DNA of 64,000 nt from Parasitella parasitica NRRL 2501 (GCA_025201805.1 MU619364.1:15119-79118), one strand, 5' to 3'; shown: positions 5,963 through 45,214, numbered from the stretch's first letter. The notes: generated by a model not told the origin, from the sequence alone. Program-made: numbers and translations.

Positions 5963-6378
5963 AAGATGAGTGCAGTATTTTTGATTGAAGAGGGACATGG
6001 GGGATGTTCTCAATGAAAATGGCGGTCCTGAGTCCTTGGGAGTACATTGTTGGATCAGAATGAGATTGTTGTTGAAACAATTGCGACTCACACTGATTAC
6101 TTGGAAAACTTTGCTTCCAGCGAATCTTTGGCTTGCCCAATGCAAATTGAAAAGCCAAAAGATGATGACATTCATATGAAGGAGGCAAGCATAAAATGGG
6201 ATTATGTTCGGTATACGATCCAGGATAAGGTTTGATTTTTCGATCTGAAGATTGAAAAGTGCAGCCAAGCAGTTGAGCATTCACATATGAAATGCACTGT
6301 TTATAACATTATTATGAGAAATAAATGCAATCTTCCATTAAAAAGAGCAGATTTTTCATTCTGTCGAGAGGAATACAG
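5963..6378 (+). pseudogene. Left arm of element A: internally deleted IS630/Tc1 transposase 5' fragment
   Basis: HTH-region peptide followed by KCNLPLKRADF/HSVERN, alignable to ITLKKLEKIPAARN of the intact transposase at 31278. Confidence 0.7.
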
Positions 6379-7994
6379 TAGTCCAGTAAAGTCTTTGACA
6401 GAGACGATGAAACACATCAAGTAAAAGAAAGAGTTGTGGCATGTCCATGATCAGCTTTGATAAATCGCGAATGGAGTTTGGAACCGTGATAGCAGCGAGC
6501 TCATAAAACATGTACAAACCAGCGAATGGAAGCGTCATAACGTAAAATGAGACCGTGTTTCCCACAACTTAGGGGCCAAGTACACCATCCATGCCATATT
6601 CATCAAGAGCATTCTTGCAAAATATCGCCACACGCATGAGGTCACTGCAGAGCATCAAGTTGCTGTCGGATTCCACCGTCGGTTTGGCCTCCCTGTATGC
6701 GCTGCTTACCATCCAATGCACGCCTCGGGAACGCGTTATAGTAATTTCGGGACACACGTTCGTCAGCAGGTCCTTTTTCTTCACCTCCATAGTGCATTCA
6801 TCAAGCCAGCGGAAGAAGACGCCTTGAGATGGATTGTTAAAGAGGCCACACAAGAAAGGTTCCACAAAGCGGGTGTTTTGCTCCATTTCTCGAAGCCCTC
6901 TGTTAAGAGCAGCGTCAGGCAATTTGTGAATCAAATTAATAATAGCATCTCTAATTTGACGCTGCCGCTCATCCAGTTTTAACAACATAAGCTGAAAAAT
7001 GGCAGCATCACGATCGATCAGATGCTTGTCCAAATTGTCCAAGATTTCCACCATGCTTTTCATCAATTCCAATGGCATGGAGTCTCGTGTAAGCTTGTAC
7101 TTGGACTGTATGCAACGCACCGTGGTGACAAGACCCGCGTCAGTGAAAAAAGGGGCCAGGTCATATGGGTAATGATGAGGGGATAAAAGTAGAATGTGCG
7201 ACGCTACCAGGGCAAGATGGACGTGATTTCCCAAGGTGTATTTCCACAGACGTCCAGGGATGGATATTTGCATATCATGAAATGCTTGGGAAACGTCGAA
7301 TTCGTCTGCCATCAAATGTCCGTCTGAATTCAGAGGATACACGGTGTATCCAGAACCACCCAGTTTTTCCTTCTCAAACTGGCTGTTATATCAGTAACAT
7401 GGCGAGGTCTCACGTCAAGATCTCAGATCAGTCCCAGGGTCTTACAGTAAATCATGGGTAGTCATGATTTACATTATGCAGTTAGACAGTAGAAACCTAG
7501 TGTAGTTCTTTGGCAGATTTATTTTATCAGACTTTTGACATATCACTGGCCACCAATGTCATCATCGTTAGGTTTTTGTCTCTTCACAGGCACAGTTTTG
7601 GCGGGAGCGATTTTTCGGTGGACGCGGAATGAGTTGGCAATGTGCTTTTGGACAATGCAGCAGGAAGAATGGCTGAGTGCTTTTCATACAAATGCTCCTT
7701 TAAATCGTTGAGATTTTTACGATAAAATCGACAGACTGGACATTCATGATAGTATTCCACAACGTCAGGAAGCGTTTTATTTGCTTTAGCAGTGATGTAG
7801 ACAATTTCATTGGTGTCTTGGCGTTTTGGCCTGTTGGAGGTAGCAGGAAAATCGAAGCTGTGTTGTGTTTCAAAGTGTGAACGATATCGTTGCATAGAAG
7901 AAGCAGTGTGATTGCAACCATCTTCTAAACAAACAAGCTTATAAAAGCATACAAGCTTCATGAGAAGGAAAAAGGATGAAAAAGAGGCATGCAA
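6356..7994 (-). pseudogene. Cargo of element A: probable N-terminal pair of C2H2 zinc fingers plus C-terminal PD-(D/E)xK-like nuclease domain, disrupted
   Basis: CLEDGC..HFETQH and CPVC..HLYEKH (7584-7994); FFRW..CPEITI..REAK..DLMRVAIFCKNALD..LG(stop)VVGNTVSFY..GLYMFYEL (6356-7342), collinear with the element B cargo. In-frame TAA at ~6569; the link between the ZnF and nuclease parts is inferred. Confidence 0.65.
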
Positions 7995-7999
7995 AAATC

Positions 8000-8103
8000 T
8001 TAGCCATTGCCTAACAAATGTTAATCATTACCTAACAAATGTTAGCCATTACTTTACAATGTTAGCCATTGCCTAACAAATGCTAGCCACTGCCTAATAA
8101 TTG
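8000..8103. repeat. Five-copy ~21-bp tandem repeat (consensus TTAGCCATTGCCTAACAAATG)
   Basis: Units at 8000, 8021, 8042, 8062 and 8083, read directly. Confidence 0.9.
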
Positions 8104-8199
8104 TCATTTCGCAGTTTCTGAAAAAAAGTTCAAGTAAATGATAAAAGTCATGGTGCTTGTGATAATATATATTAGAGAAAAAGAGGAATAGCTTTGTTT

Positions 8200-9420
8200 C
8201 ATTTATAATGAACATGCAAAGAGAATGTATTATGAATTAAGCTACGGTATCTACATCATATCTTCAAGTTCAAGGTAGTCTTCAAAAATGGTTATGACTA
8301 TCTATTGACAAACATCTGTAAATTTGTCTGTCGACTTTGGATCAAAAACCTTTAATTGGATTTAGGAACAGAGAGAAAGGTTGAAGATGAACACATTTAT
8401 GTCCTTAATTTTTATACAAAAAAAACAGTTTTCCTGAATGGGTGTGTTATCCTGGAGGCAGATTGTTTCATTTTCTCTGGCATTTTCTGATACCCTCAGT
8501 TGATCCGGCATCTTCTAATGTGGAAGGTCTTTTCAGACAAGTCCCAAACTGGCTTCTCTATATCCAGTTGTACATTAGAGCAGCTAGTCAAACCTGTGCC
8601 ATCTTTTCCATAATATCGGAATGGTTCTACAAAAAGTGTGTGTCTTTGCAAAGCCAGGTGTTTAGATTTTAGGCGCTTAATTTTTTGGTCCCCGCAAACT
8701 TCAGTGTGTTATCAGAAAGAAGACAAAAACTGTAAGGAAATAATGTTAAGCGATTTTGAACACAAAAACAAATAATTCAAAGTAATACATTAGACTATAA
8801 GGCACCTTTTGATTATACATTTGCATAGTTTTGAGCAAGTTTTTGTACTTTTTAAGTTGATATCAGATGAAGGTGGCGAGTTTTCGGAAAAATATTTCAC
8901 AGAATCGGAGCGTGGGACCTTCAGACTAGGTACAGACATACAAGTAATATCATTAGAAAGCCAAGAGGCACAAAATTTAGATGAACTAGGTTGCAAATGT
9001 TTTTTTCTTGAGTTGGGTAAGCTATGGCTTCTCAAAGCTAATGCTTTCTTAGAAAAAAAAAAACCCTCTTTTCTTCGATCGCGGAGATTAAACGCGTCCA
9101 AAATCAGGAAGCAAAAATTCTTTCAGAAACTCCATTTGGACAATTCGAAAACAAAATTACTCCTTTGAGGCAAGATATCATCTTCCGATACTATGTATAC
9201 CACGGCTGTCAGTTAATGATCATAGATGTGTTTTTGGGCGCTCTACAAGCTGGTATCATTTTCATGAATCCCGTATGCTTATGGAAGAAATTCTGTCGAG
9301 AAAATCTCAAAAGCAGATTAAGAGGTAAAAGTCAATATTTTGCTTAGTCAGAGCGCATTTTTAGTCTTTCAGATCAAGGAATGGCCTTGTACGATCATTT
9401 TCCTCCAATATATACCATAG
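8200..9420 (-). pseudogene. Degenerate coding-like segment inside element A, family unassigned
   Basis: Fragmented minus-strand frames with intron-like gaps; weak resemblance to the N-terminal part of the B cargo (W..QNI, DFW). Confidence 0.25.
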
Positions 9421-10057
9421 TAAAAAGTTGCATTTTTGGGGTCAAAATCGAGGATAATGCACTTTCAATGATTTTGGATGTGTAGACACAAGGAAAAAAT
9501 TGAAAAAATTTGTCATTTTTGCATCGAAAAAAAAATCATGCTCAAATTGCACCAAAATCATATATAATATAGTCTTTTGCCAATGTATACTATTTCTGGT
9601 ATTTTCAGGGCACTTTTGATTATGAAAATCAACAAAAAAAATGGCACAAAAAGCTGAAGTTCTTGCTTTTAAGCTGTAAAAAATATCTGTCTGAAGATGG
9701 TATCAAGTCAACATCAATTCTAGTACATGACACAGCTCTATAAAGTAAGCTTTTTGGTACCACAAGTATACCTTTCTTCATAGTAATATGATGAAACAGG
9801 TGTGGCCCATCGAGTTGAAAGCAGAAGAGGAATAATTTACAAGTCGCTAATTGCTAGTGACAGAGAAGCCATATACCATTGTTGCTTATAGTAATGCTCA
9901 ATGTCAGTTCAAGAGTTCATTTTTTTGTAATCCTAATGTTGAACATGTAAAAATAGAAAGTAAAATAGAGGTTAGGATTGAGGTTGAAGGTAATTTTATT
10001 AACAAAAGTTAAGCCTCATAATAAGCTTCTGGTAGGTTCCAGGTTCCAGGCACTGTA

Positions 10058-10150
10058 CTGTAGAGTATCAAATTCTGAATAGCGGATAACACTCGCTATA
10101 CCAAACAAATTTTTGTATACCAACCTGTCCGTTATAACGAGTCCCGACTG
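10058..10150. mobile_element. Possible short pogo/Tigger-like MITE remnant
   Basis: Right end CGTTATAACGAGTCCCGACTG|TA resembles pogo-type TIRs; left end TA|CTGTAG is degenerate. Confidence 0.35.
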
Positions 10151-10799
10151 TAAATTCTCTCTTTGATATTGGATAAACTGACTTGACTCAACAGATGTAA
10201 CATAAAATGATAATGTAAAGTTATAAAAATAGAAATTCCCATTTGCTTGAATATGCTATGATTTTTGAAAAGACACATAATTAAATAATTGGTTTAAACC
10301 TAGATTCAGGGATAAACTGCCATTTTGTAAATGCAGCTTGATACTTTTAAACCTTTTTTAGTTTAAATGCCTATGCAGCTCTATGGACTTGTCTAAATAT
10401 TTGAGCTTATTTAGACGTCTAATTTCTAACGGGTATATTTGGAATAATTTATCAACATTTAAACATTATGGAATTCAAACAATTTTGTATTCTGGTTAAT
10501 TGATGATTGTTCAGTTTCAGGTTCTAAAGTACATGTCGTTAGTGTCGATAAAGAGTTTTCATTGCATGAAAAATGAGATAATAAAAAACCCAAATAATCA
10601 TTCATTTAAAAATACCTATTACTCCTGCACAATGGCTGTTTGATCAAAAATAAAATAATTAGAACGCCGCAATTTCGCATATCATTATAAAATGTTCTCT
10701 ATTCTTGGGCATTTTTAATCTAAAATAGAAATCTAAAAATGTGCTTGTATTTAATACTTGTCCCTGCTTGAAATATTCTTAGGGGGACATTTCTCTTCT

Positions 10800-11572
10800 C
10801 TCAGAGACATCTCAGTTTTCATCAGAAATAAAAAGTTTGTTATCAGAAATCCTTCCGTAATTCCTTTTGATAATGTGTCTTCCTGCCACTGCCCAAACTG
10901 TTCTATTGGATTAAGCTCAGGAGAATAGGTAGGAAGATACGCTTTATTTATATCCTCGATACTCAACATACTTCTTTATGTTTTCATGTGTGTGAATGGG
11001 TGTATTATCCATGAACTACGCAGTGACCTTTCATATGTGAATGTTTACTCTTTTCAGTGAGAGTTGTTTTAAAGAAACTGATGTAGTGGCCTGTCTTTTC
11101 AATGGAAGGCTGCATTTACTTTTCATAATAATGTTATAAACAGTGCATTTCGTATGTGAATGCTCAACTGCTTGGCTGCACTTTTTAATCTTCAGATCGA
11201 AAAATCAAACCTTATCCTGGATCGTATACCGAACATAATCCCATTTTATGCTTGCCTCCTTCATATGAATGTCATCATCTTTTGGCTTTTCAATTTGCAT
11301 TGGGCAAGCCAAAGATTCGCTGGAAGCAAAGTTTTCCAAGTAATCAGTGTGAGTCGCAATTGTTTCAACAACGATCTCATTCTGATCCAACAATGTACTC
11401 CCAAGGACTCAGGACCGCCATTTTCATTGAGAACATCCCCCATGTCCCTCTTCAATCAAAAATACTGCACCGATCTTCGCTATTTGGAATCACTGTGAAC
11501 ACCGTCATCTTTAAATTTACAGGCAATTTATATTAGTCGAACTGGGGTGTATCGAGTTGATCTTCAAACATG
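10800..11572 (-). pseudogene. Right side of element A: internally deleted IS630/Tc1 transposase
   Basis: N-terminal arm sequence, then TGHYISFFKTTL..MKGH..DNTPIH..YLPTYSPELNPIEQF (DDE_3 catalytic D and E motifs) with frameshifts. Confidence 0.85.
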
Positions 11573-11705
11573 ATTTGTTGCTAGCTGAATTTTCTTTCTA
11601 CTTGATTTTTTTTTTTTTGCCTTCTCATTACATATAGTGCATTAGTTTGCTATCATTTGTTGTGGCAACCATAGTATTTTTATTTGAAAATTAGCAGCAA
11701 TTATA

Positions 11706-12169: not shown

Positions 12170-12197
12170 GTCTGCTTTTTTTTTTTTTTTTTTTTTT

Positions 12198-12949: not shown

Positions 12950-13120
12950 GATGGCTATATTATGTTAGGTTGGAAAATAAAGAGAGAAAGCGAATGATGT
13001 TTAGACACAATCTTTTTAGACTAAAAGCCACTAGTCAACTCAAGTTTCGTGTCGCTTTTAAACAACCGCTAAAACATCTCTTCTCTCTTTCAAGGTCATT
13101 ACTGGAACGATAGAAGAACA

Positions 13121-16536: not shown

Positions 16537-16594
<58 letters not shown>

Positions 16595-16769: not shown

Positions 16770-16815
<46 letters not shown>

Positions 16816-19063: not shown

Positions 19064-19067
<4 letters not shown>

Positions 19068-19103: not shown

Positions 19104-19394
19104 CTCCCCCCTCTTCCTCATTATCTCCTAGCTAATTACCATAAATAAAAATTAAGGCTTGGACTCGTTTTTGAACAGCTTACAAATCCGCATTAGCTGC
19201 AATTCATGCTACAAGCATTGATCTAGTACAGCTGAGTCGATATGTATAACGAGTGCAACACAATGCAACGGCATAAGGTAGCACCAATAACTGGTTTAAT
19301 GGGAATCATATTAATATAAACAAACACTCTATCTCCCCTTTTCATTTTTTTTTTTTTATCTTATATTGTTCCCTTTTTGCAAATCTCTTCTTAT

Positions 19395-21356
19395 ATGATC
19401 AAGGCTGAGCTTCCACCTGAATTTCTTCAGCAAGTGGCTAGGTACCTATCACAGCAAGATTGCTGCAGCGCCTTGTATGTTTGCAAATCATGGTTCCGCG
19501 CATTTCAAAGGTCAGTCTACAGGAAAATCTACATTGACTCTGACGCACAGCTGCAGAAGCTGCTCGATTCCTTGAGCCGGTCGTATGAGTTGTATCCGCC
19601 AGACTCGTACCATAACGGCCTGGTTATCCGAGAAATCCACTTGATGCGTGAGCAACAAGATACGCTGCCGCGCCCAGCAAGCCATCAAGACCGCGGACAG
19701 CACGTACGTCTGTCTCAAGAAAACTTTGACCTAATGGCAAAGCTATGTCCTGAGCTGGAGGTGCTGGACTTTGACATCGCAGAGTGGCAGCACATCAAAC
19801 TGGACCCGACGACGACAAGCCCATGGAAGCACATGCGGCAATGTGCCCCCCTCAACTACTCAGACTTTAGCTCTCCATTTCTAGCCGCTTTCGACGGCTC
19901 GAGGCTATCGCATTTGCACCTGAATCATCGGCCAGAGGATTTGGGCCAGATTGTTGGCAGCTTGAAAAACGTGCCGAATCTGGAAGACGTTACACTTGAA
20001 ATGAATGACACTGAAAACGACGCAGCTTCTTCCTTGTCGCTCACCAAATATTTGCAGCAGATGCATGCACAATTACCTCGTCTAAGGAGCTTCAACTTTA
20101 TCCGTACAAAAACACCACATCAAGAGTCGTCTGCTCCATTGCACGACCCCCGCTTCTTGGCGGCCTTTACCGAGCCATGTCGCAACCTGCAATCACTCTC
20201 GCTGCACGGACACGTAGACTCTTTCAAGTGGTTCGAGTTCATCAGCTCCAGCTACCCGCAACTGCAGTCTCTGTCCTTGACTCAACTGACAACCAGTCGC
20301 TTTGGCACTAAATGGATGTGGCAGAATGCTCTTGTGCAAATGATCCAGTCGCTGCCACTGCTAAAGTCGCTTACATTAGGGGGTAAAAACGCGCCGCAGC
20401 TGTTCTCAAAGGCCTTTGCGGTGGAGCTTGGAAACCCCACGTGTTCGATCGACAACCTGTACATAGACTTTGAGACGTACCAAGCAATCGAGTCATGCCA
20501 GTTTCTGCTGCTCGTGCAATCGTGCGGTCTCAACCAGCTCAAGTTTTTGAGGCTACGCGTCTGGGAGCAGATCCCAGGCTGGTCGGGAGTGACGTCGAAC
20601 CTGTTTCACTGCAAGCAGCTGCAGACGCTGGAGCTCTCGCTGTCAAAGGGCCTGATGGACCAGTTTCCATTCACGCCGTTTCTTGTGGATCATCTCTTGG
20701 GCCATCTACCTCTGCTGGAAAACTTGACATTGGTAGGCGCGAACGTGCAGGTCACGTACAACAACTTTGTCGACCTTGATAAGGGGTCCTTCAAGCTGCA
20801 GAGACTGGAGCTTCGTCAGTCTAAAATCGAAAACCACGAAGCCGTGTTCATGTATCTTTCCACTTGCTGCCCGCGTCTGGATACGTTGCTACTGGAAAAA
20901 TGCGAGATTGAGAAAAAGAGGCAGCACCAAGCAGTCCTGCCATCATCCACATGGAACGCGTGCTGTATCTCTCTGCCTTACAACACAGTCGCTCAAGTCA
21001 AGCTGAGCTCCTTTTTGATATATCTCGGCACTGTGCGAAGCAATGATTTTATTGGCGTTGAACTGCTCTGCGAGCAGCAAGGCTACAGCAGGGTTGTCTG
21101 GTGCGAAACTGCTAAATCGGAAAAAGGACAGCAAATTTACCCTTCGTACCGTCTTTGTGAGGACCAAAACAAAGTTGCAGAGTTGACCGATCTCTACAAG
21201 ACTCACCACAGCTCGTCATGTCCGTCGTCCCCTCCGAGTCCCATGCCGGGTAATTTCAGCCCTAATATTGGCATTATCACTTTCAAGTGCAAAGCACTGC
21301 TATCTGGCATAGCATTAGATAACTTGATAATATCAGCAAAGCATTTTAACGAGTAA
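19395..21356 (+). CDS. F-box / LRR (RNI-like) protein, intronless
   Basis: N-terminal F-box LPPEFLQQVARYLSQQD..ALYVCKSW followed by LxxLxL repeats (CPELEVLD, YPQLQSLSL, LPLLKSLTL, CPRLDTLLL). Confidence 0.85.
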   Translation: MIKAELPPEFLQQVARYLSQQDCCSALYVCKSWFRAFQRSVYRKIYIDSDAQLQKLLDSLSRSYELYPPDSYHNGLVIREIHLMREQQDTLPRPASHQDRGQHVRLSQENFDLMAKLCPELEVLDFDIAEWQHIKLDPTTTSPWKHMRQCAPLNYSDFSSPFLAAFDGSRLSHLHLNHRPEDLGQIVGSLKNVPNLEDVTLEMNDTENDAASSLSLTKYLQQMHAQLPRLRSFNFIRTKTPHQESSAPLHDPRFLAAFTEPCRNLQSLSLHGHVDSFKWFEFISSSYPQLQSLSLTQLTTSRFGTKWMWQNALVQMIQSLPLLKSLTLGGKNAPQLFSKAFAVELGNPTCSIDNLYIDFETYQAIESCQFLLLVQSCGLNQLKFLRLRVWEQIPGWSGVTSNLFHCKQLQTLELSLSKGLMDQFPFTPFLVDHLLGHLPLLENLTLVGANVQVTYNNFVDLDKGSFKLQRLELRQSKIENHEAVFMYLSTCCPRLDTLLLEKCEIEKKRQHQAVLPSSTWNACCISLPYNTVAQVKLSSFLIYLGTVRSNDFIGVELLCEQQGYSRVVWCETAKSEKGQQIYPSYRLCEDQNKVAELTDLYKTHHSSSCPSSPPSPMPGNFSPNIGIITFKCKALLSGIALDNLIISAKHFNE

Positions 21357-29171: not shown

Positions 29172-31084
29172 TTTTCCAGCGAAAAAACAAAAGAGAGAGA
29201 GAGAGAGAGAGAGTGGAAAAGAAAGGAAGAACGTTTTACTTGAAGATCATAGTTGACTTTGAAGGAAGCCCCCTTTTATACACTGCAGCGTATATAAAAG
29301 GTATGTGGTACATAAACAACCTAATTATAGTAAACTGCTATAAACATCAGGGAATAAGAAAAGAGAATCTCGGGATTGCACCCATTTTCACTAAGAATAG
29401 ATACATGGTGATTTACCCTTTGGTTTTTCTTCTCCAAGAACCGGCTAGTAAAGAACTGGAAATTCCGAGTTGGGATTATATTGCATATATATACGCCATA
29501 ACAACAACAAATAGAGACGTAAAACGTTTATGATGGAATCGTCGTCTACCTGTTTCAACAAGGAAATGTCGCCAGCAGTATTACTTTGTGTCCATATGTT
29601 TACGACACACATGGACATGCAATTGCATTAATAAAATACATATAATATTCAGAAGCTATATTTGAAGAAATAATCCTCCAGATGGAGACTAGTGCGCCCC
29701 ATGGCCTTCAAATTCAGGTTTTGATCTGTCATGTATTGCAGCCTTATGGTTTTCATTGTGGCTTTGATTCTATTTGTTTTAGTAACAAAGCTATCAGACT
29801 TGCGGCTCCTTCCTTGCCGTGTTCTTGGAATAAAGACAGGCGAGATCATCAACTGACAAAGGTTACTCAGAGAACAAAAATTGCCACATTTCACTCAAAA
29901 GAAGGCGTACTAAAAATCATTGACTAGTTTAGAAAACGTAAGAATTGAAACATACTGCATACAGATCTTGTAGAGTACGGTTACTACAGAAGCACAAACA
30001 TTTGCTTACTTTTGCTCTCCTTCTATACTTCTTTGGAGCGTCTCTTTATCCATCTGGATTTATAAGTAGATTGTGAAGATTTTTTGTCTTGCAAAATGGC
30101 AAATTTTTTCGTCTTTTGAAAATAAAAGCATCAGTATAAGCTGGTGTACAATGCAGGCTAGAGTGTAGGCAACAGTGTGAAAGTGTGCAATTACTAGTTT
30201 GGATTTTCTGGTCTCTGCAAAAGTTTAGCCACAAAATACAACGGTTACCTAAGCGAAGGTTGAAGAAGTGGTACCTTTGGAAGCCGAGGCAAAGGCAGCA
30301 AGTATTGTATTAAGCACAACGTACATCCAAATAATGCGGTTTTTTCTCCCGCGTCAATAAAGGTAACAGTGAAAACCATGAACTGAGATTTGTCTAGAAT
30401 CAAAGACATAATAGAAATAATCAAGTTGTAGACCTCAAACGTAAGCTCAGTTGATGCAGTGGACGACACGCAAGGTAACCTACGCCCAAGCACCTTTTTG
30501 CAGAAAACGACAACGTGAGATGCTTAATTGTAGACAGGGTCAATATCAGTAATTGCACCTAGTGTGTATGCTGGATCTTAAGCTCACTTCAAGTAATTTA
30601 GGATAATGAGAATACACAATCACACTTGACATTGACGATGTCAGTTTTATATGTAATGTTGTGTTTTACTTTAAAAGATAGAATCAGCTTTTAGCTTTTA
30701 CGAAAATACGTATATACGTATATGAATTAGGAAAAAAAAAAAAAAAAAAGGCGCCTATGTAGATAAATATTGGCATGATGTGCTCTAAACCCAAATAGTT
30801 TTTCGCCATTTCTCTGTTGATCCTGAATTGCAGCTGTATGGTATCATAATGTTTCCTTGTCCCAGCCACGCTTACAAAGTAGATGTGAAACTACTCAAGT
30901 AGCATTGGACGTATAAATTTTCTAAATATTCTCTTTCAATTCTTTTGAGGACGATGTTTTTGACGCAACATTTATGATGAATGAATCATGCTGCATTCAT
31001 TGATGCCAGCATTATTGGTGCTCCAAGAATTAAGAAGTGGGGTTTTTTGACTGTGTTTGTTGGATGTACTGTTTTTTGAATATG

Positions 31085-31186
31085 AGTTTGCGTTGAGATA
31101 AAAATTTATTTGCGCTGACATTAAAAGAATATTTACGTCAAGGTAAAAATAGTTTTGCGTTGCTTAGTAATAAATTTTGCGCCAAG
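31085..31186. repeat. Subterminal TTTGCG(T/C) direct repeats (x4), probable transposase binding sites; mirrored at 37531-37632
   Basis: tttgcgttg, tttgcgctg, ttttgcgttg and ttttgcgcc within ~120 bp of the terminus. Confidence 0.55.
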
Positions 31187-31277
31187 AAATTAGAAAAAAA
31201 ATATATAAAATAACCTAAAATATCGTAAAGGTTTCAACTCCTTTTTTCTTTTATTTAGTTTGAATATTAGAACAAAC

Positions 31278-32669
31278 ATGCAAAGCGTTAGTAAATTTAT
31301 TACTAATAGTGAAATTATTTCAGATAACGATATGGACACTTCATCTGACGATTATATGGAAGATGACGAGCAAGAAGAAATGGAAATTGAGCATTTCAGT
31401 TTGAGCGAAGAATGGATGGAGAAAATAAGACGCATTGGGAATGATTCTCTATCATATGTACGTGAATATATGGAAGTAGATTTAATAGAGGAAGAGAATG
31501 AAGATTTTTTTGGAGATGCTTTTCTCTTCGCAGAGTCAATGCCATTGAGAAAAAGACATACGGCTTTGAATGTTAAAACAAGAGGTTCTTACAGAAAATA
31601 TACTCCTAAACAAGTTGAGAAACTCTTCGACTTAATAATCGAAGAAGGATTCACGACAAAAGCTGCAGCTTTAGCCACTGGGATTAATGTACGCACTGCC
31701 CAGAATTACGTTAAAACTTATAACAATGATCCTGAGAGACGACTTCCAGGATCTTATTCTAAACCTCATGGAAGACCTCGTAATAAGTTGACTGAGGAGC
31801 ATTCTAAATTTCTAGTTGACTATATCGAAAAGAATACCACTGCTATATTAGATGAGTTAAAGTTAAAACTTTGTGAGAAATTTGAGGGTTTAAAAATCTC
31901 TATTTCTGCCATCCACAAACATTTAGTACATAAGCATAAAATTACGTTAAAGAAACTTGAAAAAATACCAGCAGCAAGAAATTCTGACAGAGTAATAGCA
32001 TTACGAAAAGCGATTGTTGAACAATATAAGAGTGATGCAGATATGGATTTTTCTAAGAATTGTGTTTTTATCGATGAAGCAGGTTTCAATTTGCATACGC
32101 AAAGAAACCACGGCCGTTCATTAAAAGGCACACCTGCAAAGGGCACTGTACCAACTGGAAAAGGTGTAACATTTACAATTTTAGGTGCAATTTCTCAAGC
32201 AGGTATCATAAATATTGGAGTTAAAAAACCAGAATCAGCTTCTTCTAAAAAAAGAAGGGCAGATGGTAAGGAAGTAAAAATAAATGGCAAAGTTGGGACA
32301 AGAACTGAGCACTTTTTGGCTTATCTAAACAACGTAATGGATACACTGGATAAAAATAATATAAAGGGGCAGTATATTGTTTTGGATAATGCACCTATTC
32401 ATAAGCCAAAAGTAATCAAAGCATTGATCGAAGAACGAGGACATAAGTGCATATATTTGCCACCATATTCTCCTTTCTTGAATCCAATCGAGGAATTTTG
32501 GTCAAAAGTAAAGGCTGGTGTTAGAAGAACACCATTGACGACAGATGATCGTCTCACAGATCGTATATGTGAAGCGGCTGGAAAAGTAACAAAAAAAGAT
32601 TGTGAAGGATGGATTAAGCATTCAATATCATTTTTCCAGAAGTGTTTGAATGAGGAAAGAAATCTTTAA
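31278..32669 (+). CDS. IS630/Tc1-family DD34E transposase (left arm, intact, ~463 aa)
   Basis: HTH (AAALATGINVRTAQNYV), VFIDEAGF, IVLDNAPIH, YLPPYSPFLNPIEEFW; 34 residues between second D and E. Confidence 0.95.
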   Translation: MQSVSKFITNSEIISDNDMDTSSDDYMEDDEQEEMEIEHFSLSEEWMEKIRRIGNDSLSYVREYMEVDLIEEENEDFFGDAFLFAESMPLRKRHTALNVKTRGSYRKYTPKQVEKLFDLIIEEGFTTKAAALATGINVRTAQNYVKTYNNDPERRLPGSYSKPHGRPRNKLTEEHSKFLVDYIEKNTTAILDELKLKLCEKFEGLKISISAIHKHLVHKHKITLKKLEKIPAARNSDRVIALRKAIVEQYKSDADMDFSKNCVFIDEAGFNLHTQRNHGRSLKGTPAKGTVPTGKGVTFTILGAISQAGIINIGVKKPESASSKKRRADGKEVKINGKVGTRTEHFLAYLNNVMDTLDKNNIKGQYIVLDNAPIHKPKVIKALIEERGHKCIYLPPYSPFLNPIEEFWSKVKAGVRRTPLTTDDRLTDRICEAAGKVTKKDCEGWIKHSISFFQKCLNEERNL

Positions 32670-32736
32670 AATAGTCAGTAGGAGTGCAGCTTTCAACAGA
32701 CGCACTCTGAATGCTCACTGAGATTTGAACAACATG

Positions 32737-32807
<71 letters not shown>

Positions 32808-32964
32808 AAAGGAAAAAAGAAAAACGATAAAAGCAAGAAGAAAAGTTAATATTGAAATTAAAGGATAAAAAAGCCCATCATTTAATAACATAAATGCAAT
32901 ACATATGAATAAATACTGTACAACCATTAATATCTTAAAGCTTAACATAAATATATCTACAGTA

Positions 32965-34638
32965 TTAAAATCGAACTGGGCAACTTCGATTACGGTCCTT
33001 TGTTGGGTCTGTCAAATCAATCAAATCAGTAAGTTTTACTGATGTTCGGCGTCTTTGTTGCATAATACTTGGTATATCAGACTTTTTACAGAACTTCCAA
33101 AAGACATGGCATACAAGTAGCAAGATATTCAAGTTTTTAAGGTTTGTGAAAACTGGAAGTTGTGCCAAAGAGGAAGGGAATTCAAGGTGGCCGACCTCAT
33201 ACATAACATAAAGTCCGTCATGGTCCAGTCTTGTTAGAAAAAATGTAATGGCAAATCCTATATTTACAAAATTAGCTACTCTCAAACACAAATCTATGGG
33301 TATAGTAGACATAAAAAAATTAAATTACCGTGGATTTGAAATGAAATTGAAGACTCCAGAAGGTGCAAGTCAATAGCTTCCTTGCTAAAACAAGCGACTC
33401 TCGCCAAGTCCATACATAACGCCGCTTTGTTACATGTTGGTTCCGCAATTTTAACTTCACCGTGTCCAAGGGTAGCACTAAACTTTAGTTGGTCAACAAT
33501 AGAAACTACAGCATCTGGTCTCAAAGGCAAACTGGGGCTAATAACTTTGTCTAGCCACCTTAACAATACTGATCTTTCTGAATTAGCAAGAACACAAGAC
33601 AACAACGAGTCGAAATAAGTATTCCAGAGCTCAGTTTCACTAATGGCGCTCACATCATTTATGGAATTCTTGGGCAACTTTTGAATCCTAAGGCGAAGAT
33701 AAGAAGGTGAGAAGGTGAGAAGGTGAGAAAGGGAGAATGGTATTCAACGAGAAGAAACACTTACAACATAGCGAGACCCACTATGACTCTCTGTTTTTCA
33801 TATGGCATCTTTGATGCAATTTGTAATAATCCTGCAGTAGTTGACAGTACTGATGTGATTCCGGAGTCTAGGTTCATAATGTTTTCAACGATGCTCATAA
33901 ATTCTGCTGGAGTAAACTTCATATCTGGAATTCAATTTTCTTCTGGAATTCATCATGTATTTTGGCTAACAAAGAATCAGTAAAGACTGAACGCATCAAG
34001 TGACTGTACTGAAGGGGTTGTAGCAAGAGGATATTATTTAATGACAATAATTCCTGAACATGTTCTTCCATCTTGAGAGTCTGGTTGCCCTGTATTATAC
34101 GTTTCACTTCGTTTTTAAAGATTCGGAAACAATCTTGAATATCATTCAATGGCTCTTGTTGTACATGTTCGTGATGTGGAGGTTCTTGTGCCGGTTCATC
34201 GTACAGGAGTGTCCTTGCTTGTTCATCATTCAAATTGACTTCGCTTGCTGCTGCATCAGGTATAATTTCTCCAATTCTTGCTTGAGTCTGTGTTGACAGT
34301 TCTTCATCACCATTTCGTAATTCATTAGCTTCCTGTTCAGCAACATCTCCGACATAGTCAGCGCAGATTCCATGTATTCTATCTCTTACAATATTTCGTC
34401 GTTTCTCCTTCCAGTAATTTTTGTAATCAGATGATAATTTGAATGCTGTAAATTCTCGTGTCAATTGTTGGACTTTCTCATTATTAACCAGATATTTCTG
34501 TAAGATAGTGTTATATCTGCGATTAGCTTTTCGGCTGTCGGTAAAATTATATTCGTCAAAGAAGGCTTTTGCTGTTAAGGTTTGAATATTCTCTTTGCAC
34601 CATTTTGCATCATCAGGAATCTTACGTGGCATTTTCAT
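32965..34638 (-). CDS. Cargo of element B: ~510-aa protein with C-terminal PD-(D/E)xK-like nuclease domain; 3 exons, one apparent frameshift near 33930
   Basis: Introns 33764-33688 and 33328-33258 join in frame; LRW..LRPDAVV..GHGEVK..DLARVACFSKEAID..FQIHG|FAITFF..GLYVMYEVG..FPSSL. A frameshift is needed between KKIE and IPDMKF. Confidence 0.75.
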
Positions 34639-34892
34639 GTAAAAAAGACAAAAAAAAAACGCTGTTACTAAATGAGAATGCGGTCATTTACTCCGATTTC
34701 GGTCATTTAATGGTTTGGGTGGGAAAGTACTGATGACAAAGTGGCTTCGCGACATTTATCTCTGACGGCTTCAAAAAAAAAAATTGTGCTTGTTTTTTTC
34801 TTTTTGTTTTTGTAAGTGCCAATCATGAAGATGCCCTGTGGCCAGTAGTTTGTGATTGTGATAGAATTGTATATTTCTTCTTGAATCATAAA

Positions 34893-35096
34893 GCGAAAAA
34901 CCCCGGATACTGTCTCCCCTGCGATGTTTACTATTTTGCAAATGTCCCTGGAGATGGGTTGTTCATGTTTCTTGAATGCGTTGCAGCTAGTAGTCTGTGA
35001 TTCCTTAATAGAAATATGTATTCACTGGCGAACCCTCCCGATATCATCTCTCTTGCGACATTCACTATATTGCGAATGTCCCCAGAGATGAGTTTC
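34893..35096 (+). ncRNA. Two diverged copies of a ~60-nt stem-loop with compensatory substitutions (candidate structured RNA) in the core of element B
   Basis: Copy1 TGTCTCC..GATGTTT..AAATGTC..GGAGATG; copy2 CATCTCT..GACATTC..GAATGTC..AGAGATG; stem differences preserve pairing, with G-U wobbles on the + strand. Confidence 0.45.
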
Positions 35097-35281
35097 AAGA
35101 AGGCACTTACGCATTACTTTTAACTGTGAAGCTTTAAAATTTACTTCAGTAATTTTAAGTCAAGAAGATTCAAAAACAACGCTAAGTATTATCCTGATAA
35201 CATTAACACACTGTTATTCTAAACGTAATTTAAAACTAATTATATTTTTTTTGAACTTTATAAGTATATTATTCAGCCAAT

Positions 35282-35752
35282 ATGTAACAAAGCGGCGTTA
35301 TGTATGGACTTGGCGAGAGTCGCTTGTTTTAGCAAGGAAGCTATTGACTTGCACCTTCTGGAGTCTTCAATTTCATTTCAAATCCACGGTAATTTAATTT
35401 TTTTATGTCTACTATACCCATAGATTTGTGTTTGAGAGTAGCTAATTTTGTAAATATAGGATTTGCCATTACATTTTTTCTAACAAGACTGGACCATGAC
35501 GGACTTTATGTTATGTATGAGGTCGGCCACCTTGAATTCCCTTCCTCTTTGGCACAACTTCCAGTTTTCACAAACCTTAAAAACTTGAATATCTTGCTAC
35601 TTGTATGCCATGTCTTTTGGAAGTTCTGTAAAAAGTCTGATATACCAAGTATTATGCAACAAAGACGCCGAACATCAGTAAAACTTACTGATTTGATTGA
35701 TTTGACAGACCCAACAAAGGACCGTAATCGAAGTTGCCCAGTTCGATTTTAA
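35282..35752 (+). pseudogene. Duplicated 3' fragment of the element B cargo inside the right arm (lacks the PD and EVK codons)
   Basis: Exact reverse complement of 32965-33435. Confidence 0.85.
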
Positions 35753-35909
35753 TACTGTAGATATATTTATGTTAAGCTTTAAGATATTAATGGTTGTACA
35801 GTATTTATTCATATGTATTGCATTTATGTTATTAAATGATGGGCTTTTTTATCCTTTAATTTCAATATTAACTTTTCTTCTTGCTTTTATCGTTTTTCTT
35901 TTTTCCTTT

Positions 35910-35980
<71 letters not shown>

Positions 35981-36047
35981 CATGTTGTTCAAATCTCAGT
36001 GAGCATTCAGAGTGCGTCTGTTGAAAGCTGCACTCCTACTGACTATT

Positions 36048-37439
36048 TTAAAGATTTCTTTCCTCATTCAAACACTTCTGGAAAAATGATATTGAATGCT
36101 TAATCCATCCTTCACAATCTTTTTTTGTTACTTTTCCAGCCGCTTCACATATACGATCTGTGAGACGATCATCTGTCGTCAATGGTGTTCTTCTAACACC
36201 AGCCTTTACTTTTGACCAAAATTCCTCGATTGGATTCAAGAAAGGAGAATATGGTGGCAAATATATGCACTTATGTCCTCGTTCTTCGATCAATGCTTTG
36301 ATTACTTTTGGCTTATGAATAGGTGCATTATCCAAAACAATATACTGCCCCTTTATATTATTTTTATCCAGTGTATCCATTACGTTGTTTAGATAAGCCA
36401 AAAAGTGCTCAGTTCTTGTCCCAACTTTGCCATTTATTTTTACTTCCTTACCATCTGCCCTTCTTTTTTTAGAAGAAGCTGATTCTGGTTTTTTAACTCC
36501 AATATTTATGATACCTGCTTGAGAAATTGCACCTAAAATTGTAAATGTTACACCTTTTCCAGTTGGTACAGTGCCCTTTGCAGGTGTGCCTTTTAATGAA
36601 CGGCCGTGGTTTCTTTGCGTATGCAAATTGAAACCTGCTTCATCGATAAAAACACAATTCTTAGAAAAATCCATATCTGCATCACTCTTATATTGTTCAA
36701 CAATCGCTTTTCGTAATGCTATTACTCTGTCAGAATTTCTTGCTGCTGGTATTTTTTCAAGTTTCTTTAACGTAATTTTATGCTTATGTACTAAATGTTT
36801 GTGGATGGCAGAAATAGAGATTTTTAAACCCTCAAATTTCTCACAAAGTTTTAACTTTAACTCATCTAATATAGCAGTGGTATTCTTTTCGATATAGTCA
36901 ACTAGAAATTTAGAATGCTCCTCAGTCAACTTATTACGAGGTCTTCCATGAGGTTTAGAATAAGATCCTGGAAGTCGTCTCTCAGGATCATTGTTATAAG
37001 TTTTAACGTAATTCTGGGCAGTGCGTACATTAATCCCAGTGGCTAAAGCTGCAGCTTTTGTCGTGAATCCTTCTTCGATTATTAAGTCGAAGAGTTTCTC
37101 AACTTGTTTAGGAGTATATTTTCTGTAAGAACCTCTTGTTTTAACATTCAAAGCCGTATGTCTTTTTCTCAATGGCATTGACTCTGCGAAGAGAAAAGCA
37201 TCTCCAAAAAAATCTTCATTCTCTTCCTCTATTAAATCTACTTCCATATATTCACGTACATATGATAGAGAATCATTCCCAATGCGTCTTATTTTCTCCA
37301 TCCATTCTTCGCTCAAACTGAAATGCTCAATTTCCATTTCTTCTTGCTCGTCATCTTCCATATAATCGTCAGATGAAGTGTCCATATCGTTATCTGAAAT
37401 AATTTCACTATTAGTAATAAATTTACTAACGCTTTGCAT
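36048..37439 (-). CDS. IS630/Tc1-family DD34E transposase (right arm, identical protein)
   Basis: Translation identical to 31278-32669. Confidence 0.95.
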   Translation of the reverse strand: MQSVSKFITNSEIISDNDMDTSSDDYMEDDEQEEMEIEHFSLSEEWMEKIRRIGNDSLSYVREYMEVDLIEEENEDFFGDAFLFAESMPLRKRHTALNVKTRGSYRKYTPKQVEKLFDLIIEEGFTTKAAALATGINVRTAQNYVKTYNNDPERRLPGSYSKPHGRPRNKLTEEHSKFLVDYIEKNTTAILDELKLKLCEKFEGLKISISAIHKHLVHKHKITLKKLEKIPAARNSDRVIALRKAIVEQYKSDADMDFSKNCVFIDEAGFNLHTQRNHGRSLKGTPAKGTVPTGKGVTFTILGAISQAGIINIGVKKPESASSKKRRADGKEVKINGKVGTRTEHFLAYLNNVMDTLDKNNIKGQYIVLDNAPIHKPKVIKALIEERGHKCIYLPPYSPFLNPIEEFWSKVKAGVRRTPLTTDDRLTDRICEAAGKVTKKDCEGWIKHSISFFQKCLNEERNL

Positions 37440-37820
37440 GTTTGTTCTAATATTCAAACTAAATAAAAGAAAAAAGGAGTTGAAACCTTTACGATATTTT
37501 AGGTTATTTTATATATTTTTTTTCTAATTTCTTGGCGCAAAATTTATTACTAAGCAACGCAAAACTATTTTTACCTTGACGTAAATATTCTTTTAATGTC
37601 AGCGCAAATAAATTTTTATCTCAACGCAAACTCATATTCAAAAAACAGTAAATGAAAGGCTGGAGAACGACCCTAGGATTGTCGATGATCCTAATGGTTC
37701 CCAGCACTCTCAAAGGTCTCGCATACCAAGGTTGTGTGTTACATCAAAGACCGCAATGCATTATTACAGTCAAATAATTTGCTTTATTTTTCTATGATTA
37801 GTTGAGCTATGATACAATGG

Positions 37821-39290: not shown

Positions 39291-39584
39291 CGAAATGACA
39301 CACGAACTACGTAAAATAATAAAAAAAAAAAGGTTTGTCTGCGCGACTGGGTTCCTTTCACAATCAACCTCACACTTGAAAAGGGACGTGATGTTGAAGG
39401 TTGTTCTGGCCCTCATGATTGGACGGCATTACACGATGATTCCATTTGATGAGGGCAAAATGTAACAAACAAAAACGATCAAGGAGAGAGTAATTACCTT
39501 GGGTCTAAAATCGTATGATAAATAAGAGTTACTGCACATGTAACAATGTACTAGCAATGTACTTTTTTTTTTTTTTTTTTTTTT

Positions 39585-39594
39585 NNNNNNNNNN
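39585..39594. other. Assembly gap (10 N) after a poly-T run
   Basis: N bases in sequence. Confidence 0.99.
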
Positions 39595-39905
39595 CGGGTA
39601 GCAAGATTGCAGAACCCCTTTTCCGAGATTATCGTTTTGCAAATCCTTAATTCTTTAAATCTCGATCAAAGCAAGGACATTTTTAAGGAGGCCATGCTTA
39701 TTTCGAGTGGGACAGCTCTGTATTGTAAATGTAATGGATCATTCAGAACGTTGTACAAACCACACTGCTACCTGTGTTGCCAATTTGATTGATGTTCCGT
39801 GATTGATCAATCAAAGAGCGTATAAATTGAAAACAGTTTCACTGGGCATCTCTCTTCATTTCTCTCTTTCCTTTTTTTTTATTTTATTCATCATACGGAA
39901 TCAAA

Positions 39906-41096: not shown

Positions 41097-41630
41097 AGAC
41101 ATGATGTATACCCTTAAATTTCAAACAAAACATGTACAGTACAGTCAATAATTGTCACTTTCATAAAAATGATTGGCCGAAAGGCAAAAATAATTGGCGG
41201 CAATTGAAAAATAAATGTCACAAGCTCAATTCTTTTTGTCATTTTGCCAAGGATATTTGTGCGTCTGTAGTGCGCTATTCTAATTTGAACACCCGACCTC
41301 TGTTTGCCTGCTTGTTCTAAGCAAGTATTCCCCAAAACGGGTGTTTGTGTAGCGGAGGGTGGCTCCTGAACAGATGCTCTTTGATTACAATTGTGTGCCC
41401 TATTTCAGGTCGCTTTGTACAGTCAATCAGTGCTATTTTTCAAATTAGACGTAAAACTCTACTCTCATGTTCTTAACAAATCTAGTCTTAATTAATTAAT
41501 CTTGATACGCTTTTCTTTTTATGTAACTGTATCTATTAAGTTGCGTTAATGTAAAAGATGGCTTATTTTAAATGGCATAATTCAATCACATCGAACCTTA
41601 ATAAACCTTTTAACAAACTTCCTTAACCGG

Positions 41631-44600
41631 AAACATTATTCAATATTAATATGGATCTTTATGTCAAAAGCTCCTAATACATAAGCTCAAACTTGTGCTC
41701 AAACTTGTGCTTTGATTTATAGATATATCATCGACTTTGCTTTGTAAGAGCAAAACCTTGCTGCCCTTTAGATAATATATCGCCAGAGATGAATGGATAA
41801 ATATAGATGCATGAACAGAGGAATTCAAAATGGATGTGAAAGGTGAAAGTATGTAAAAAAAAAAAAAAAAGATATAGGATCGAAGGAAAACCATAGCAAT
41901 CGATATTCAAGTTTGGAGGTGGTACGCATCTTATGCCAATGATATGGGGTATCTGATGGATTAAGACTGAGGACAGAGTGAAAATATGGAAATCACCTTC
42001 AATAAACAGCCAATCCATACGTGCTTTTGTATTCTGTTGCTATTTTGGAGATGTAGCAGAGCATGTATTTTTAATAGCCAATGAATTAAACAAAGTTATA
42101 CTGTACATTATTATCAATGATTTTATTATAGTTTTAGAAACATCCTGGCGTATTAGTACTAGAAACAAGCTATAGAACTATGGCTTTTTATATAAAAGGC
42201 AGAGCAAAAAAATAGTAGATAATCTATTATGAAAGTAAGTTTATCTTACATATTGGTTGAGAAGTATGTAGTCGCATTGGCCTATCGTAGAGGCGAAACA
42301 AACATAACTTTGTTAAAACAGACATACATCAAAATACGACAAAAGAAACTTCATTAGAGGAGCCATTGACTAAAGATCCGCATTATCATAAATATTTCCA
42401 TATTTTACTCAAAAGGCTAAATATGCCCCTATAGACTTAAAGGAGAGAACATCTACCTTATATTAAGTAGTTTCCTGTTTTTGTGTATTATTTAGTAAAT
42501 ATCTCTTATTTATTTTCAAGACTTAAAAGAAAATAGAGCCTTTTTTTTAAATTGAGTTTCTCTTTATTCAAATGGATTACAAGTCATTCGAACACCTGTA
42601 GAAATATGGAGCCAACTTTCATCTGCTTGCTTTTTGAATCCATCTCGCTCTTCTTCTCCTTCTTCTGAATCCAGATTGCTAGTGTCACTATCAATACCTT
42701 CAATATCAGTCATATCAACCAAAGAATCTGACATTTCTACAAATAGCGGAGCTTTGGATCTGGTAGCATCATTACAAGGTGGGGTGTAATATGTATTGAT
42801 ATGATTACTTGGGAGATGAGAGGGTGGCACCATGTTAGTAGCTTTTTCAAATTTCTGAATAATGGAGCTAACTGAATTCCGATTTGATTTTAAAGTATGT
42901 TGTGAATATTGAGTAGTCTCTTCAATATCACTCCGGATCATCAGAAGATTATTGATTTCATCAATAAAACCAGCCATGCTTGCGAGTGATGTAGAGAAAT
43001 GGGACCGAAAGCGAGGAATCACAATGTAAAAACCATTTTGAGTATAGTGGGTGGTAGAACCAATGCCGACGGTACTCGAGATTTGTAAAAACCAAGTTTT
43101 TACATCCCATTGAATATCCTTCAATAATCCCAGATTGTATCCAGACTATCTTTTGATTCCCTGCATAATTTCCACTATCACGTTCATTCTTTTCGTTGAA
43201 CCATACTCATTATTTGTTCTCGAAATTCGGTATAAGTCTGTAGTACATAATTTATCTGTAGCTAGTAACATGGATATAAGTATATGTCTTGTAGTGCTTC
43301 GAAGCGTATTCCCAGTTTCCAGATACGCCTCCGGGATACAGTTCTTCTTTGCCTTTCTTCATACTATCCGAAACTGATTCGCCACATTTGATACGGATCA
43401 GATTGTTGTTTGACGAGAAAATTCTTCTAAATAATGAGTCCCAAATATTTAATATATAATCTTTTTTGACGGCATTGGATCCAATATCAGCTGGTTATTT
43501 TCATAGATGTCAAGACAGGTTGAGAACAGCTTATATACAACTCACGTGGAAGGTGCAAGGTTTGTTTCAGAAAGTAGTTTAGACATATATTGATCGGCCA
43601 TAAGAACGCTATTTGTATTGATACACATTTTGCGCAATAGACTCCATTTTCAGTAAAGGACATATCTAGAGAATAATATATCTAGATAATTGTTTAGTGT
43701 TGTATATTTTCTTTTGAGTAAAGCCCAAACATTTTATCGAATAACAGTGCTTAACCATTATCATTAAAATCAAGAATACAAGACAGATCAAGAGTCATTC
43801 GTTTTTTTTTTGTTGAGGTGAAAGCTTCTTCTTTTCTGTGGATAGTTGATGTAGCTTTAAAGCATTTTGGTAGAAAACATGTTGAGCATTGATTAATCCT
43901 AAGGACTTTGCTTCACTGGTTTGATTGCTGCTGCTGCTGCCACTCTTACTACCTTCTCCTTGATTACTTGGTTCATTTCGTACCGATCTGAGCCCTTTTT
44001 GAAGTAATTCTTCAAGTATAATATTTTTATCAAGTTTGCTGTTCCTCTTCATGGTTTCATATTGTTGTTGGAGCATTTACTTCTTGAGCGTGTCAAACTC
44101 AATTTGATAAAGATCGAATATACCTTCTTTTTTCGTATATTTATGCATTTTCTTTGCGTATGTTTGTACATCAGGCTTTAGCCTACATCTATTAAATACA
44201 GGATCAAAAGCTGTTTTATATTTATCAAATGATTGCATTGCAGTGGCTGATCTTGATTGCTTTTGTTCTTGGTTTAGATCATTGTATATTAAGGATTTGA
44301 ATTCACACCAATACATAATGGGAACATTAGCTAGGATCTTTGGGATCTTGAGAGTAGCTGTTTCTTTTGAAGATATCTTAAAAGTACGAGGTATTCCATG
44401 TGCTTTAGGGGCTTCATCTACCGGATGCAACATATTATGTATGATAGATAGCTAAACGTGTTTCATGCTCTTCAAATAAAATTATCAAAAATATCCAATC
44501 AAATTCGTACTTTACATCCGGATTTTAGAAACTAAAAAGGAGCTATGTATCACCTCTACGATAGGCCAATGCGACTACATACTTCTCAACCAATATGTAA

Positions 44601-45214
44601 GATAAACTTACTTTCATAATAGATTATCTACTATTTCTTGCTCTGCCTTTTATATAAAAAGCCATAGTTCTATAGCTTGTTTCTAGTACTAATACGCCAG
44701 GATATTTCTAAAACTATAATATAATCATTGATAATAATGTACAGTATAACTTTGTTTAATTCATTGGCTATTAAAAATACATGCTCTGCTACATCTCCAA
44801 AATAGCAACAGAATACAAAAGCACGTATGGATTGGCTGTTTATTGAAGGTGATTTCCATATTTTCACTCTGTCCTCAGTCTTAATCCATCAGATACCCCA
44901 TATCATTGGCATAAGATGCGTACCACCTCCAAACTTGAATATCGATTGCTATGGTTTTCCTTCGATCCTATATCTTTTTTTTTTTTTTTTACATACTTTC
45001 ACCTTTCACATCCATTTTGAATTCCTCTGTTCATGCATCTATATTTATCCATTCATCTCTGGCGATATATTATCTAAAGGGCAGCAAGGTTTTGCTCTTA
45101 CAAAGCAAAGTCGATGATATATCTATAAATCAAAGCACAAGTTTGAGCACAAGTTTGAGCTTATGTATTAGGAGCTTTTGACATAAAGATCCATATTAAT
45201 ATTGAATAATGTTT
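41631..45214. mobile_element. Element C: decayed element with ~660-bp inverted arms derived from a canonical Tc1 transposase and nuclease-like cargo
   Basis: 41631-42293 mirrors 44553-45214 with few substitutions; arm encodes KFGGGTHLMPMIWG (41909-41950; Tc1 KHGGGSVMVWG motif) and LRSM*SHWPIVEAK (42257-42298; Tc1 C-terminal SMPxR..V..AKG). Possible degenerate outer tips at TA|CAGTCAATCAGTGC (41420) and GCACCGATTG|TA (45314). Confidence 0.78.
42564..44433 (-). pseudogene. Cargo of element C: disrupted member of the same nuclease-like family
   Basis: Frames broken by stops and frameshifts; YPGGV (degenerate PD, ~43330), TDLYRIS (~43230), FLQI..NGFYIV..FSTSL collinear with B cargo DLARV, FQI, GLYVM, FPSSL. 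Confidence 0.6.

Follow-up and report, generated by a model that had tools for sequence, protein, structure and literature searches.

Palindromic Tc1/IS630-type elements carrying a predicted restriction-endonuclease-like passenger family in Parasitella parasitica

A 64,000-nucleotide (nt) stretch of the genome of Parasitella parasitica NRRL 2501 (GCA_025201805.1 MU619364.1:15119-79118; hereafter the window, with positions counted from its first letter) contains three inverted repeats, designated elements A, B and C, which were confirmed at the coordinates of an original prediction made from the sequence alone. Elements of this type are probably derivatives of the Tc1/IS630 family (DD34E), in which one end had been lost and the other, copied in inverted orientation, had taken its place. 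Their Tc1/IS630-type ends and transposases were associated with one passenger (cargo) gene family of predicted PD-(D/E)xK fold, and genome-wide counts support this association as recurrent and non-random. Taken together, the elements represent a real, recurrent and apparently undescribed variant of the Tc1/mariner transposons.

Structure of element B

The layout predicted for element B, with a transposase gene in each arm and a passenger between them, was fully recovered, the two transposase genes being identical and intact. The 2.37-kb arms differed by a single mismatch in 2372 nt, at 33436, and the termini of the element, reading CTGTTTTTTGAATATGAG, matched perfectly at both ends. The transposase had Pfam matches to DDE_3 (E-value 8e-29) and to HTH_32/HTH_29, and sequence features by which Tc1/mariner elements are recognised were found in B: the DD34E triad together with a helix-turn-helix (HTH), the TA target-site duplication and the terminal inverted repeats (TIRs). 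In the left arm the transposase stop codon was followed by 68 nt, then by the poly(A) tract of 69 nt and the 3'-terminal ~475 nt of the minus-strand cargo gene, which spanned the arm/centre junction just past its ExK motif (Table 1). Microhomology at the inner junctions of B was limited to 4 nt or less and was uninformative. Retroposition as the source of the poly(A) tract was set aside, since the exact 5' terminus is kept; the tract was also common to two ~94%-identical metagenome contigs (L026 and L027).

Compared piece by piece with homologues, the cargo exons of B formed collinear stop-free pieces separated by short introns, and judged from its sequence the passenger gene is apparently intact. 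Two oligo-dT RNA-seq runs labelled 'fungus metagenome' contained 42% of the words sampled from the centre of B (32900-35900), which hints that the passenger gene is transcribed.

Table 1. Positions of the features of elements A, B and C, and of an assembly gap, in the window
Feature	Position	Strand	Remarks
Element B, 6.58-kb palindromic Tc1 derivative	31069..37648	.	TA/TA flanks at 31067-31068 and 37649-37650
B left arm	31064..33440	+	5' TIR, transposase gene, poly(A) tract, last ~475 nt of cargo gene
B transposase, 469 amino acids	31260..32669	+	HTH and DDE_3; D272, D376, E411 (DD34E)
Poly(A) tract, 69 nt	32737..32805	+	mirrored in right arm at about 35912-35980
B cargo gene, predicted PD-(D/E)xK-fold family	32965..34638	-	multi-exon; RPD...GEVK motifs
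B unique centre	33441..35276	.	cargo 5' exons and ~640 nt
B right arm	35277..37653	-	inverted copy of left arm
Inverted partial copy of B cargo 3' end	35277..35752	+	profile positions ~332-466; inside right arm
B transposase, second copy	36048..37457	-	open reading frame identical to that at 31260..32669
Element A, 5.5-kb decayed long-TIR element	5963..11477	.	no clean TA duplication
A left arm, 388 nt	5963..6350	+	homologous to 5' end of a Tc1 family
A cargo pseudogene, family of B cargo	6356..7342	-	PE...REAK motifs; one in-frame stop; N-terminal third missing
Open reading frame with two C2H2 zinc fingers	7584..7994	-	just upstream of A cargo, same strand
A second short transposase relic	8345-8404		
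A transposase relic, internally deleted	10467..11097	-	significant at 10895-11012 (YSPELNPIE)
A right arm	11091..11477	-	97.2% to left arm (gapped alignment)
Element C, 3.58-kb decayed palindrome	41631..45214	.	without Tc1 termini; without TA duplication
C left arm, 670 nt	41631..42300	+	arm unique in genome
C cargo-like pseudogene, frameshifted	42564..43500	-	weak profile-profile match to passenger family
C right arm	44546..45214	-	99.1% to left arm (gapped alignment)
Assembly gap	39585..39594	.	between B and C, beside poly-T run; outside A, B and C

Recurrence in the genome

In the 32.8-Mb genome, at least nine additional long inverted repeats had Tc1 sequences in each of their arms, and there was also a case at a contig end (C178). 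The recurrence claimed in the original prediction was therefore borne out with at least 12 palindromes, and the passenger family was present in 6-7 of the 12 examined and absent from about five. The genome contained ~36 passenger loci in total. In an association test based on coordinate lists only, 11 of the 36 were located within 5 kb of a listed transposase match, compared to ~2-3 expected (P < 1e-4), and even a seemingly solitary copy (C33) had an unlisted transposase relic 340 nt away. The proposed check, whether cargo genes lie inside Tc1-armed inverted repeats more often than by chance, showed a clear enrichment: at least 6 of the 36 loci were inside the 84 kb occupied by the 12 inverted-repeat elements, while 0.09 would be expected.

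Several other loci showed unusual arrangements. On contig C70 (L020 3632-4032 and 5863-5988) a passenger copy was bounded by foldback-like inverted repeats of 12-nt tandem units (ATCATAGGCTAT), suggesting a second, transposase-free packaging of the passenger gene. The 6.8-kb centre of a palindrome on contig C46 contained Helitron/Pif1-helicase-like open reading frame fragments (about 170.6-171.3 kb; M_C46a 5092-5821) together with a nuclease pseudogene. On contig C14 (312667-313873) two equal-scoring DDE_3 matches were present on opposite strands in divergent orientation, ~1 kb apart, and may mark a further small palindrome.

Boundaries of the arms

The outer boundaries of most palindromes coincided exactly with the TA|CAGT termini of Tc1 elements, and the inner boundaries were arbitrary. 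In C74 and C66 one arm was a truncated copy of the complete Tc1 on the opposite side, in C46b and C25 the arms consisted of a complete Tc1 plus 503 nt (C46b) or 169 nt (C25) of further identical DNA, and in B and in the element shared by C178 and Zychaea the arms extended into the passenger gene. Since the inner ends of the arms did not fall at the inner ends of a Tc1, the arms most probably resulted from inverted duplication of one transposon end and not from two insertions.

A copy of the Tc1 of B (97% nt identity) in Phycomyces blakesleeanus provided a direct comparison. It was a native element with 156-nt TIRs, whose 3' TIR began directly after the point corresponding to position 32738 of B, where B has the poly(A) tract and the cargo; unlike the Phycomyces copy, the arms of B had no inner TIR. 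With the 3' TIR thus replaced by poly(A) and cargo, B can be read as a Tc1 that kept only one end and in which an inverted copy of this end took the place of the lost one. The same Tc1 lineage in Phycomyces was also found in a different 6.16-kb TA-flanked element, whose 250-nt arms were made from the 3' end and which carried a different gene of the passenger family. A common Tc1 breakpoint serving as a target of the passenger nuclease was considered and rejected, because B breaks at the 3' TIR boundary and the Phycomyces copy inside the 5' TIR.

These boundaries also speak to the bacterial composite design with two complete insertion elements, to which the arms had originally been likened and which did not fit either B, lacking an inner TIR, or the other arms, being shorter or longer than a complete Tc1. 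A true composite ('sandwich') would have been formed by two inverted complete Tc1 insertions around a resident gene, moved later by their outer ends. Each arm of C46b and C25 does hold a Tc1 that is complete, both TIRs included, and the two-copy design is workable, as is known from engineered Sleeping Beauty 'sandwich' vectors. Nevertheless, such an origin is very unlikely, given that the arms of C46b and C25 overrun the Tc1 into identical flanking DNA, that those of C74 and C66 are truncated, that 475 nt of the cargo are common to both arms of B, which is without an inner TIR, and that each transposase pair is the sole copy of its family in the genome.

Independent contig sets and copies in other organisms

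Contig sets from public runs were aligned to B, with the organisms designated by coded labels (A-H). For organism A (an independent sample) and for organism B, the arm contigs (runs X4/X5) had ~2x the depth of the centre, and both outer flank junctions of B were present. A single-depth unitig (33406-35311) bridged both inner junctions, its reach reproducing the mismatch at 33436. Relative to the window, the left-junction contig in runs X4 and X5 contained 5 additional letters (TACTG) following position 31080. An assembler falsely creating the palindromes might be suspected from arms given as 100% identical (apart from the one mismatch in B), but the reproduction of inner and outer junctions and of the arm mismatch in independent short-read contig sets, the 2:1 ratio of arm to centre depth and the diverged arms of A and C led to rejection of such an artefact, the probability of which is practically negligible.

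In organism D (run X9) both inner junctions were recovered at ~97-98% identity with collapsed 2x arms, while the flank of B was uncovered. One of the arms had a 1732-nt deletion removing the transposase (joint 31167 to 32900); the B-type palindrome of this organism is asymmetric, with one autonomous and one miniature arm. In organism C (run X8) the rearranged right junction was retained and the native junction was absent, with the left end of the centre (33441) joined to unrelated sequence just past the GEVKIAE motif of the cargo. The arms were identical within organisms and different between them, which points to arm-to-arm gene conversion.

The element at contig end C178 was 96-99% identical in nt over ~5 kb to a sequence of Zychaea mexicana (Lichtheimiaceae), and one of the alignments crossed a shared centre/arm junction. 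The passenger proteins were 87-94% identical between these genera and 93% identical to that of Rhizopus delemar, whereas a host F-box protein was 43-47% identical to those of Rhizopus or Mucor mucedo, and no match for it appeared in Zychaea or Phycomyces. A near-identical palindrome next to such divergence of the host protein is the pattern expected when an entire palindrome is transferred horizontally. The expectation that the elements behave as units agreed with the presence of the same palindrome junctions in Zychaea and, with another flank, in organism D; on sequence comparison, junctions shared across organisms would fit elements moving or being transferred as units. The F-box protein itself (19377-21356, + strand) had its best named match in Parasitella parasitica (76%), with Mucor species at 71-73%; the 76% match may be a paralogue.

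Passenger family and its predicted fold

The cargos of A and B matched one profile built from homologues (E-values 1e-77 and 1e-46) and also each other directly (E-value 5e-4). The C cargo was linked to the family in hhalign profile-profile comparison through two intermediate copies (E-value ~1e-4, probability 57-63%, 45-53 columns). The claim that the three cargos are related was therefore upheld for A and B, while the C cargo is a probable distant member of the A/B superfamily. Neither the cargo pieces nor the full-length homologues had a Pfam match at E <= 1, and the Atlas neighbours of the family were only unnamed Mucoromycota clusters. With 1590 representatives at 50% identity (E <= 1e-3), the family is, as far as its sequences indicate, large, unannotated and Mucoromycota-specific; a metagenome scan returned one 1.1-kb contig and nothing more.

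The alignment showed near-invariant residues P322, D323, G339, K344, D358, K367, Q382 and G385, and the conserved motif string RPD...GEAK...DLLR...K...Q.HG, corresponding to the signature D...ExK...D...K...Q. An AlphaFold model was obtained for an intact copy, the C178 homologue, which is 34% identical to the B cargo protein, with a predicted local distance difference test (pLDDT) score of 80-90 over residues 215-470. The predicted core had an alpha-beta-beta-beta-alpha-beta order, in which strand 2 carried D323 and strand 3 carried E342 and K344. The structural matches were led by nuclease domains of restriction enzymes (BpuSI, Z 8.5; DrdV, Z 8.4; HsdR, Z 6.9), followed by DUF820 proteins, Hjc and NucC, with a Foldseek probability up to 0.95. 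The passenger family has thus a predicted PD-(D/E)xK (restriction-endonuclease-like) fold, for which the structural scores are moderate but fold and motif agree, and an active nuclease is the most likely identity of the passenger.

Relation between transposase and passenger

The 'stable partnership' of transposase and nuclease proposed in the original prediction was not borne out. At 12 loci, identities of the passenger and of its neighbouring transposase were uncorrelated (Spearman -0.17): in one pair the transposases were 94% identical and the passengers 31%, and in another the passengers were 61% identical and the transposases 29%. In two species the Tc1 lineage of B (97% nt identity) was combined with distinct cargo lineages, and the layouts differed as well. 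The orientation was mostly convergent, with the transposase facing the passenger, although tandem and divergent cases were present as well. The proposed comparison of transposase and cargo trees gave disagreement and led to rejection of co-evolution; the partnership therefore appears to have been repeatedly re-made rather than inherited as a stable pair.

A role of the nuclease as a working partner, whose breaks create the inverted arm or which acts as a homing, drive or addiction factor in a new class of composite transposon, is doubtful. It would agree with the strong enrichment of the cargo family beside Tc1 sequences and within palindromes, with an arm/centre junction that falls within the cargo gene, as in B and the C178/Zychaea element, with the family-wide conservation of catalytic-type residues, and with the gain of different cargo lineages by one Tc1 lineage on two occasions, hinting at an active process. 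However, about 5 of the 12 palindromes were without the cargo family, so that the nuclease is not needed in cis; moreover, gene order and orientation varied, co-phylogeny was absent, the junction positions in Tc1 differed among the cases, and the predicted nuclease role comes from sequence and model rather than biochemistry. An extended form, in which the PD-(D/E)xK protein partners Tc1 transposases, its breaks making the arms and biasing repair to copy the unit, and in which a new class of eukaryotic, nuclease-assisted composite transposons spreads horizontally in Mucorales, perhaps via mycoparasitic hyphal fusion, must be regarded as unlikely.

Elements A and C and their surroundings

The left arm of A was 76% identical to a copy located directly upstream of a transposase on another contig, but the arms themselves contained only a weak collinear N-terminal transposase fragment (E-value 0.42). 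In the arms of C, only a ~19-amino-acid KFGGG-like string resembled a transposase, with no significant match; these arms had neither TA|CAGT ends nor other copies in the genome. The transposase arms claimed for all three elements were thus fully present in B, with its identical open reading frames, marginal in A and not verifiable in C. As to the DDE transposase, A had relics only and C none, and neither of the two had the combination of TA duplication and TIRs.

These properties leave room for an explanation by immobile local inverted segmental duplications that incidentally included transposons, with the likeness between species due to separate transfer of parts. The lack of clean Tc1 ends or TA duplications in A and C and the uniqueness of the C arms are in its favor, but the outer boundaries of most palindromes lie exactly at TA|CAGT Tc1 termini, and the inner junctions recur in Zychaea and in organism D at other sites, making this origin highly improbable.

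An open reading frame of the C2H2 type, like the one next to the A cargo, was also present in the centre of the C38 palindrome (L019 5428-5787), while none was found upstream of the closest intact homologue of the A cargo (L002). The elements were surrounded by ordinary genes, encoding a peptidase with an Fn3-like domain, an exportin, an F-box protein, a copper ATPase, a G-alpha protein and a Na/Ca exchanger, and their neighbourhood is no repeat island. Three unrelated elements of this kind were located within 40 kb of gene-rich DNA (5963-45214); given ~36 passenger loci in 32.8 Mb, the chance of such clustering over all windows was roughly 0.03 (Poisson estimate), and the clustering may reflect a regional insertion preference.

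Proposed origin of the palindromes

According to the preferred explanation, a Tc1 element would lose one of its ends, and an arbitrary length of the remaining end (0.2-3.9 kb) would be copied in inverted orientation to take the place of the lost one. After a break or an excision, repair synthesis might switch strand or template and copy the retained end backwards in a fold-back type of reaction. The product would have a single new junction and two identical outer ends usable by the Tc1 transposase. A long copied stretch would place the whole transposase gene in both arms, as in B, and a short one would give only a long TIR, as in A. Everything between the rebuilt ends could then be moved by Tc1 transposase, either its own, as in B, or, for dead copies, one supplied from elsewhere, and the arms would subsequently be kept identical by gene conversion between them. 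The passenger would ride on such elements, repeatedly re-associating with different Tc1 lineages without a fixed partner. As only derivatives regaining a second end can spread, palindromes would be enriched among the cargo-bearing copies. For Pack-TIR elements, published models invoke gap filling and the switching of replication forks (PMC8277862).

Several points weigh against this explanation. The counts were drawn from incomplete whole-genome match lists, and TA duplications cannot tell one insertion from two. Elements A and C would belong to this transposon class by analogy, C through its weak cargo match only. The structural matches of the passenger are moderate, with the best Foldseek E-value of 7.5e-3 and Z ~8 being near background for the aligner used. 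The arrangement in organism C needs an extra step, in which recombination between the arms caused an inversion or one of the arms was lost; organisms B-H are identified by coded labels that do not show how distant they are, and no excision, empty site or transposition event was directly observed.

Comparison with known systems

The elements share with Tc1/mariner (IS630-Tc1-mariner) transposons the DDE_3 DD34E transposase with an N-terminal HTH, the TA duplication and TA|C(A/T)GT termini. However, an ordinary Tc1/mariner element has a single transposase gene, and its TIRs measure from tens to a few hundred bases, in contrast to the arms described here, which reach 2.4-3.9 kb, can hold a whole gene twice and enclose an unrelated passenger. 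An inverted transposase near each end, cargo in between and putative mobilisation by the outer ends are reminiscent of Tn5, Tn10, the Sleeping Beauty 'sandwich' and Tn630, the latter being a bacterial IS630 composite first reported only in 2024 (PMC11544213). The arms of such composites are complete insertion elements with inner ends, while those found here are one-ended, variable in length and, in B and C178, share a part of the cargo.

Pack-TIR/Pack-MULE elements (PMC8277862) are likewise TIR elements with non-transposase DNA, for which an origin by gap filling or template switching followed by transposition has been proposed. They capture host gene fragments, whereas here a whole gene of a high-copy transposon-associated family is carried and the transposases may stay intact. 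Classification as Pack-TIR with a captured single-copy host gene fragment was rejected, the cargo being a full-length gene whose family has ~36 loci, most of them linked to transposons. Very long inverted arms forming much of the element are also typical of Foldback-like elements (Galileo, FB), but their arms are non-coding and built of internal repeats, and other superfamilies are concerned.

A second, nuclease-type gene in Tc1/mariner elements, including those of Mucorales, is known from the Fanzor/TnpB passengers (PMC3627910); Fanzor, however, is RNA-guided and of RuvC fold, while for the present family a PD-(D/E)xK fold is predicted and Pfam gave no match. In Tn7, too, the gene of a DDE transposase (TnsB) is accompanied by that of a protein with a restriction-enzyme fold, TnsA (PD-(D/E)xK). 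TnsA and TnsB co-evolve in a fixed gene order, whereas the elements described here vary in order and orientation, with discordant transposase and passenger trees. Full-text searches yielded no account of palindromes with Tc1 arms, or of the passenger family, in Mucorales (Repbase and Dfam being outside this scope).

Significance

If the proposed origin is correct, these elements would show how, in nature, a cut-and-paste transposon of a eukaryote can restore an end it has lost and thereby come to transport whole genes. Element B, in which both transposases are intact, the ends perfect and the passenger apparently intact, is a candidate both for testing transposition and for use as a large-cargo vector in Mucorales. 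With near-identical copies available from different fungal families, the horizontal transfer of transposons among Mucorales can be tested directly, and a very large unannotated family of restriction-enzyme-like genes appears to live on such vehicles in early-diverging fungi.

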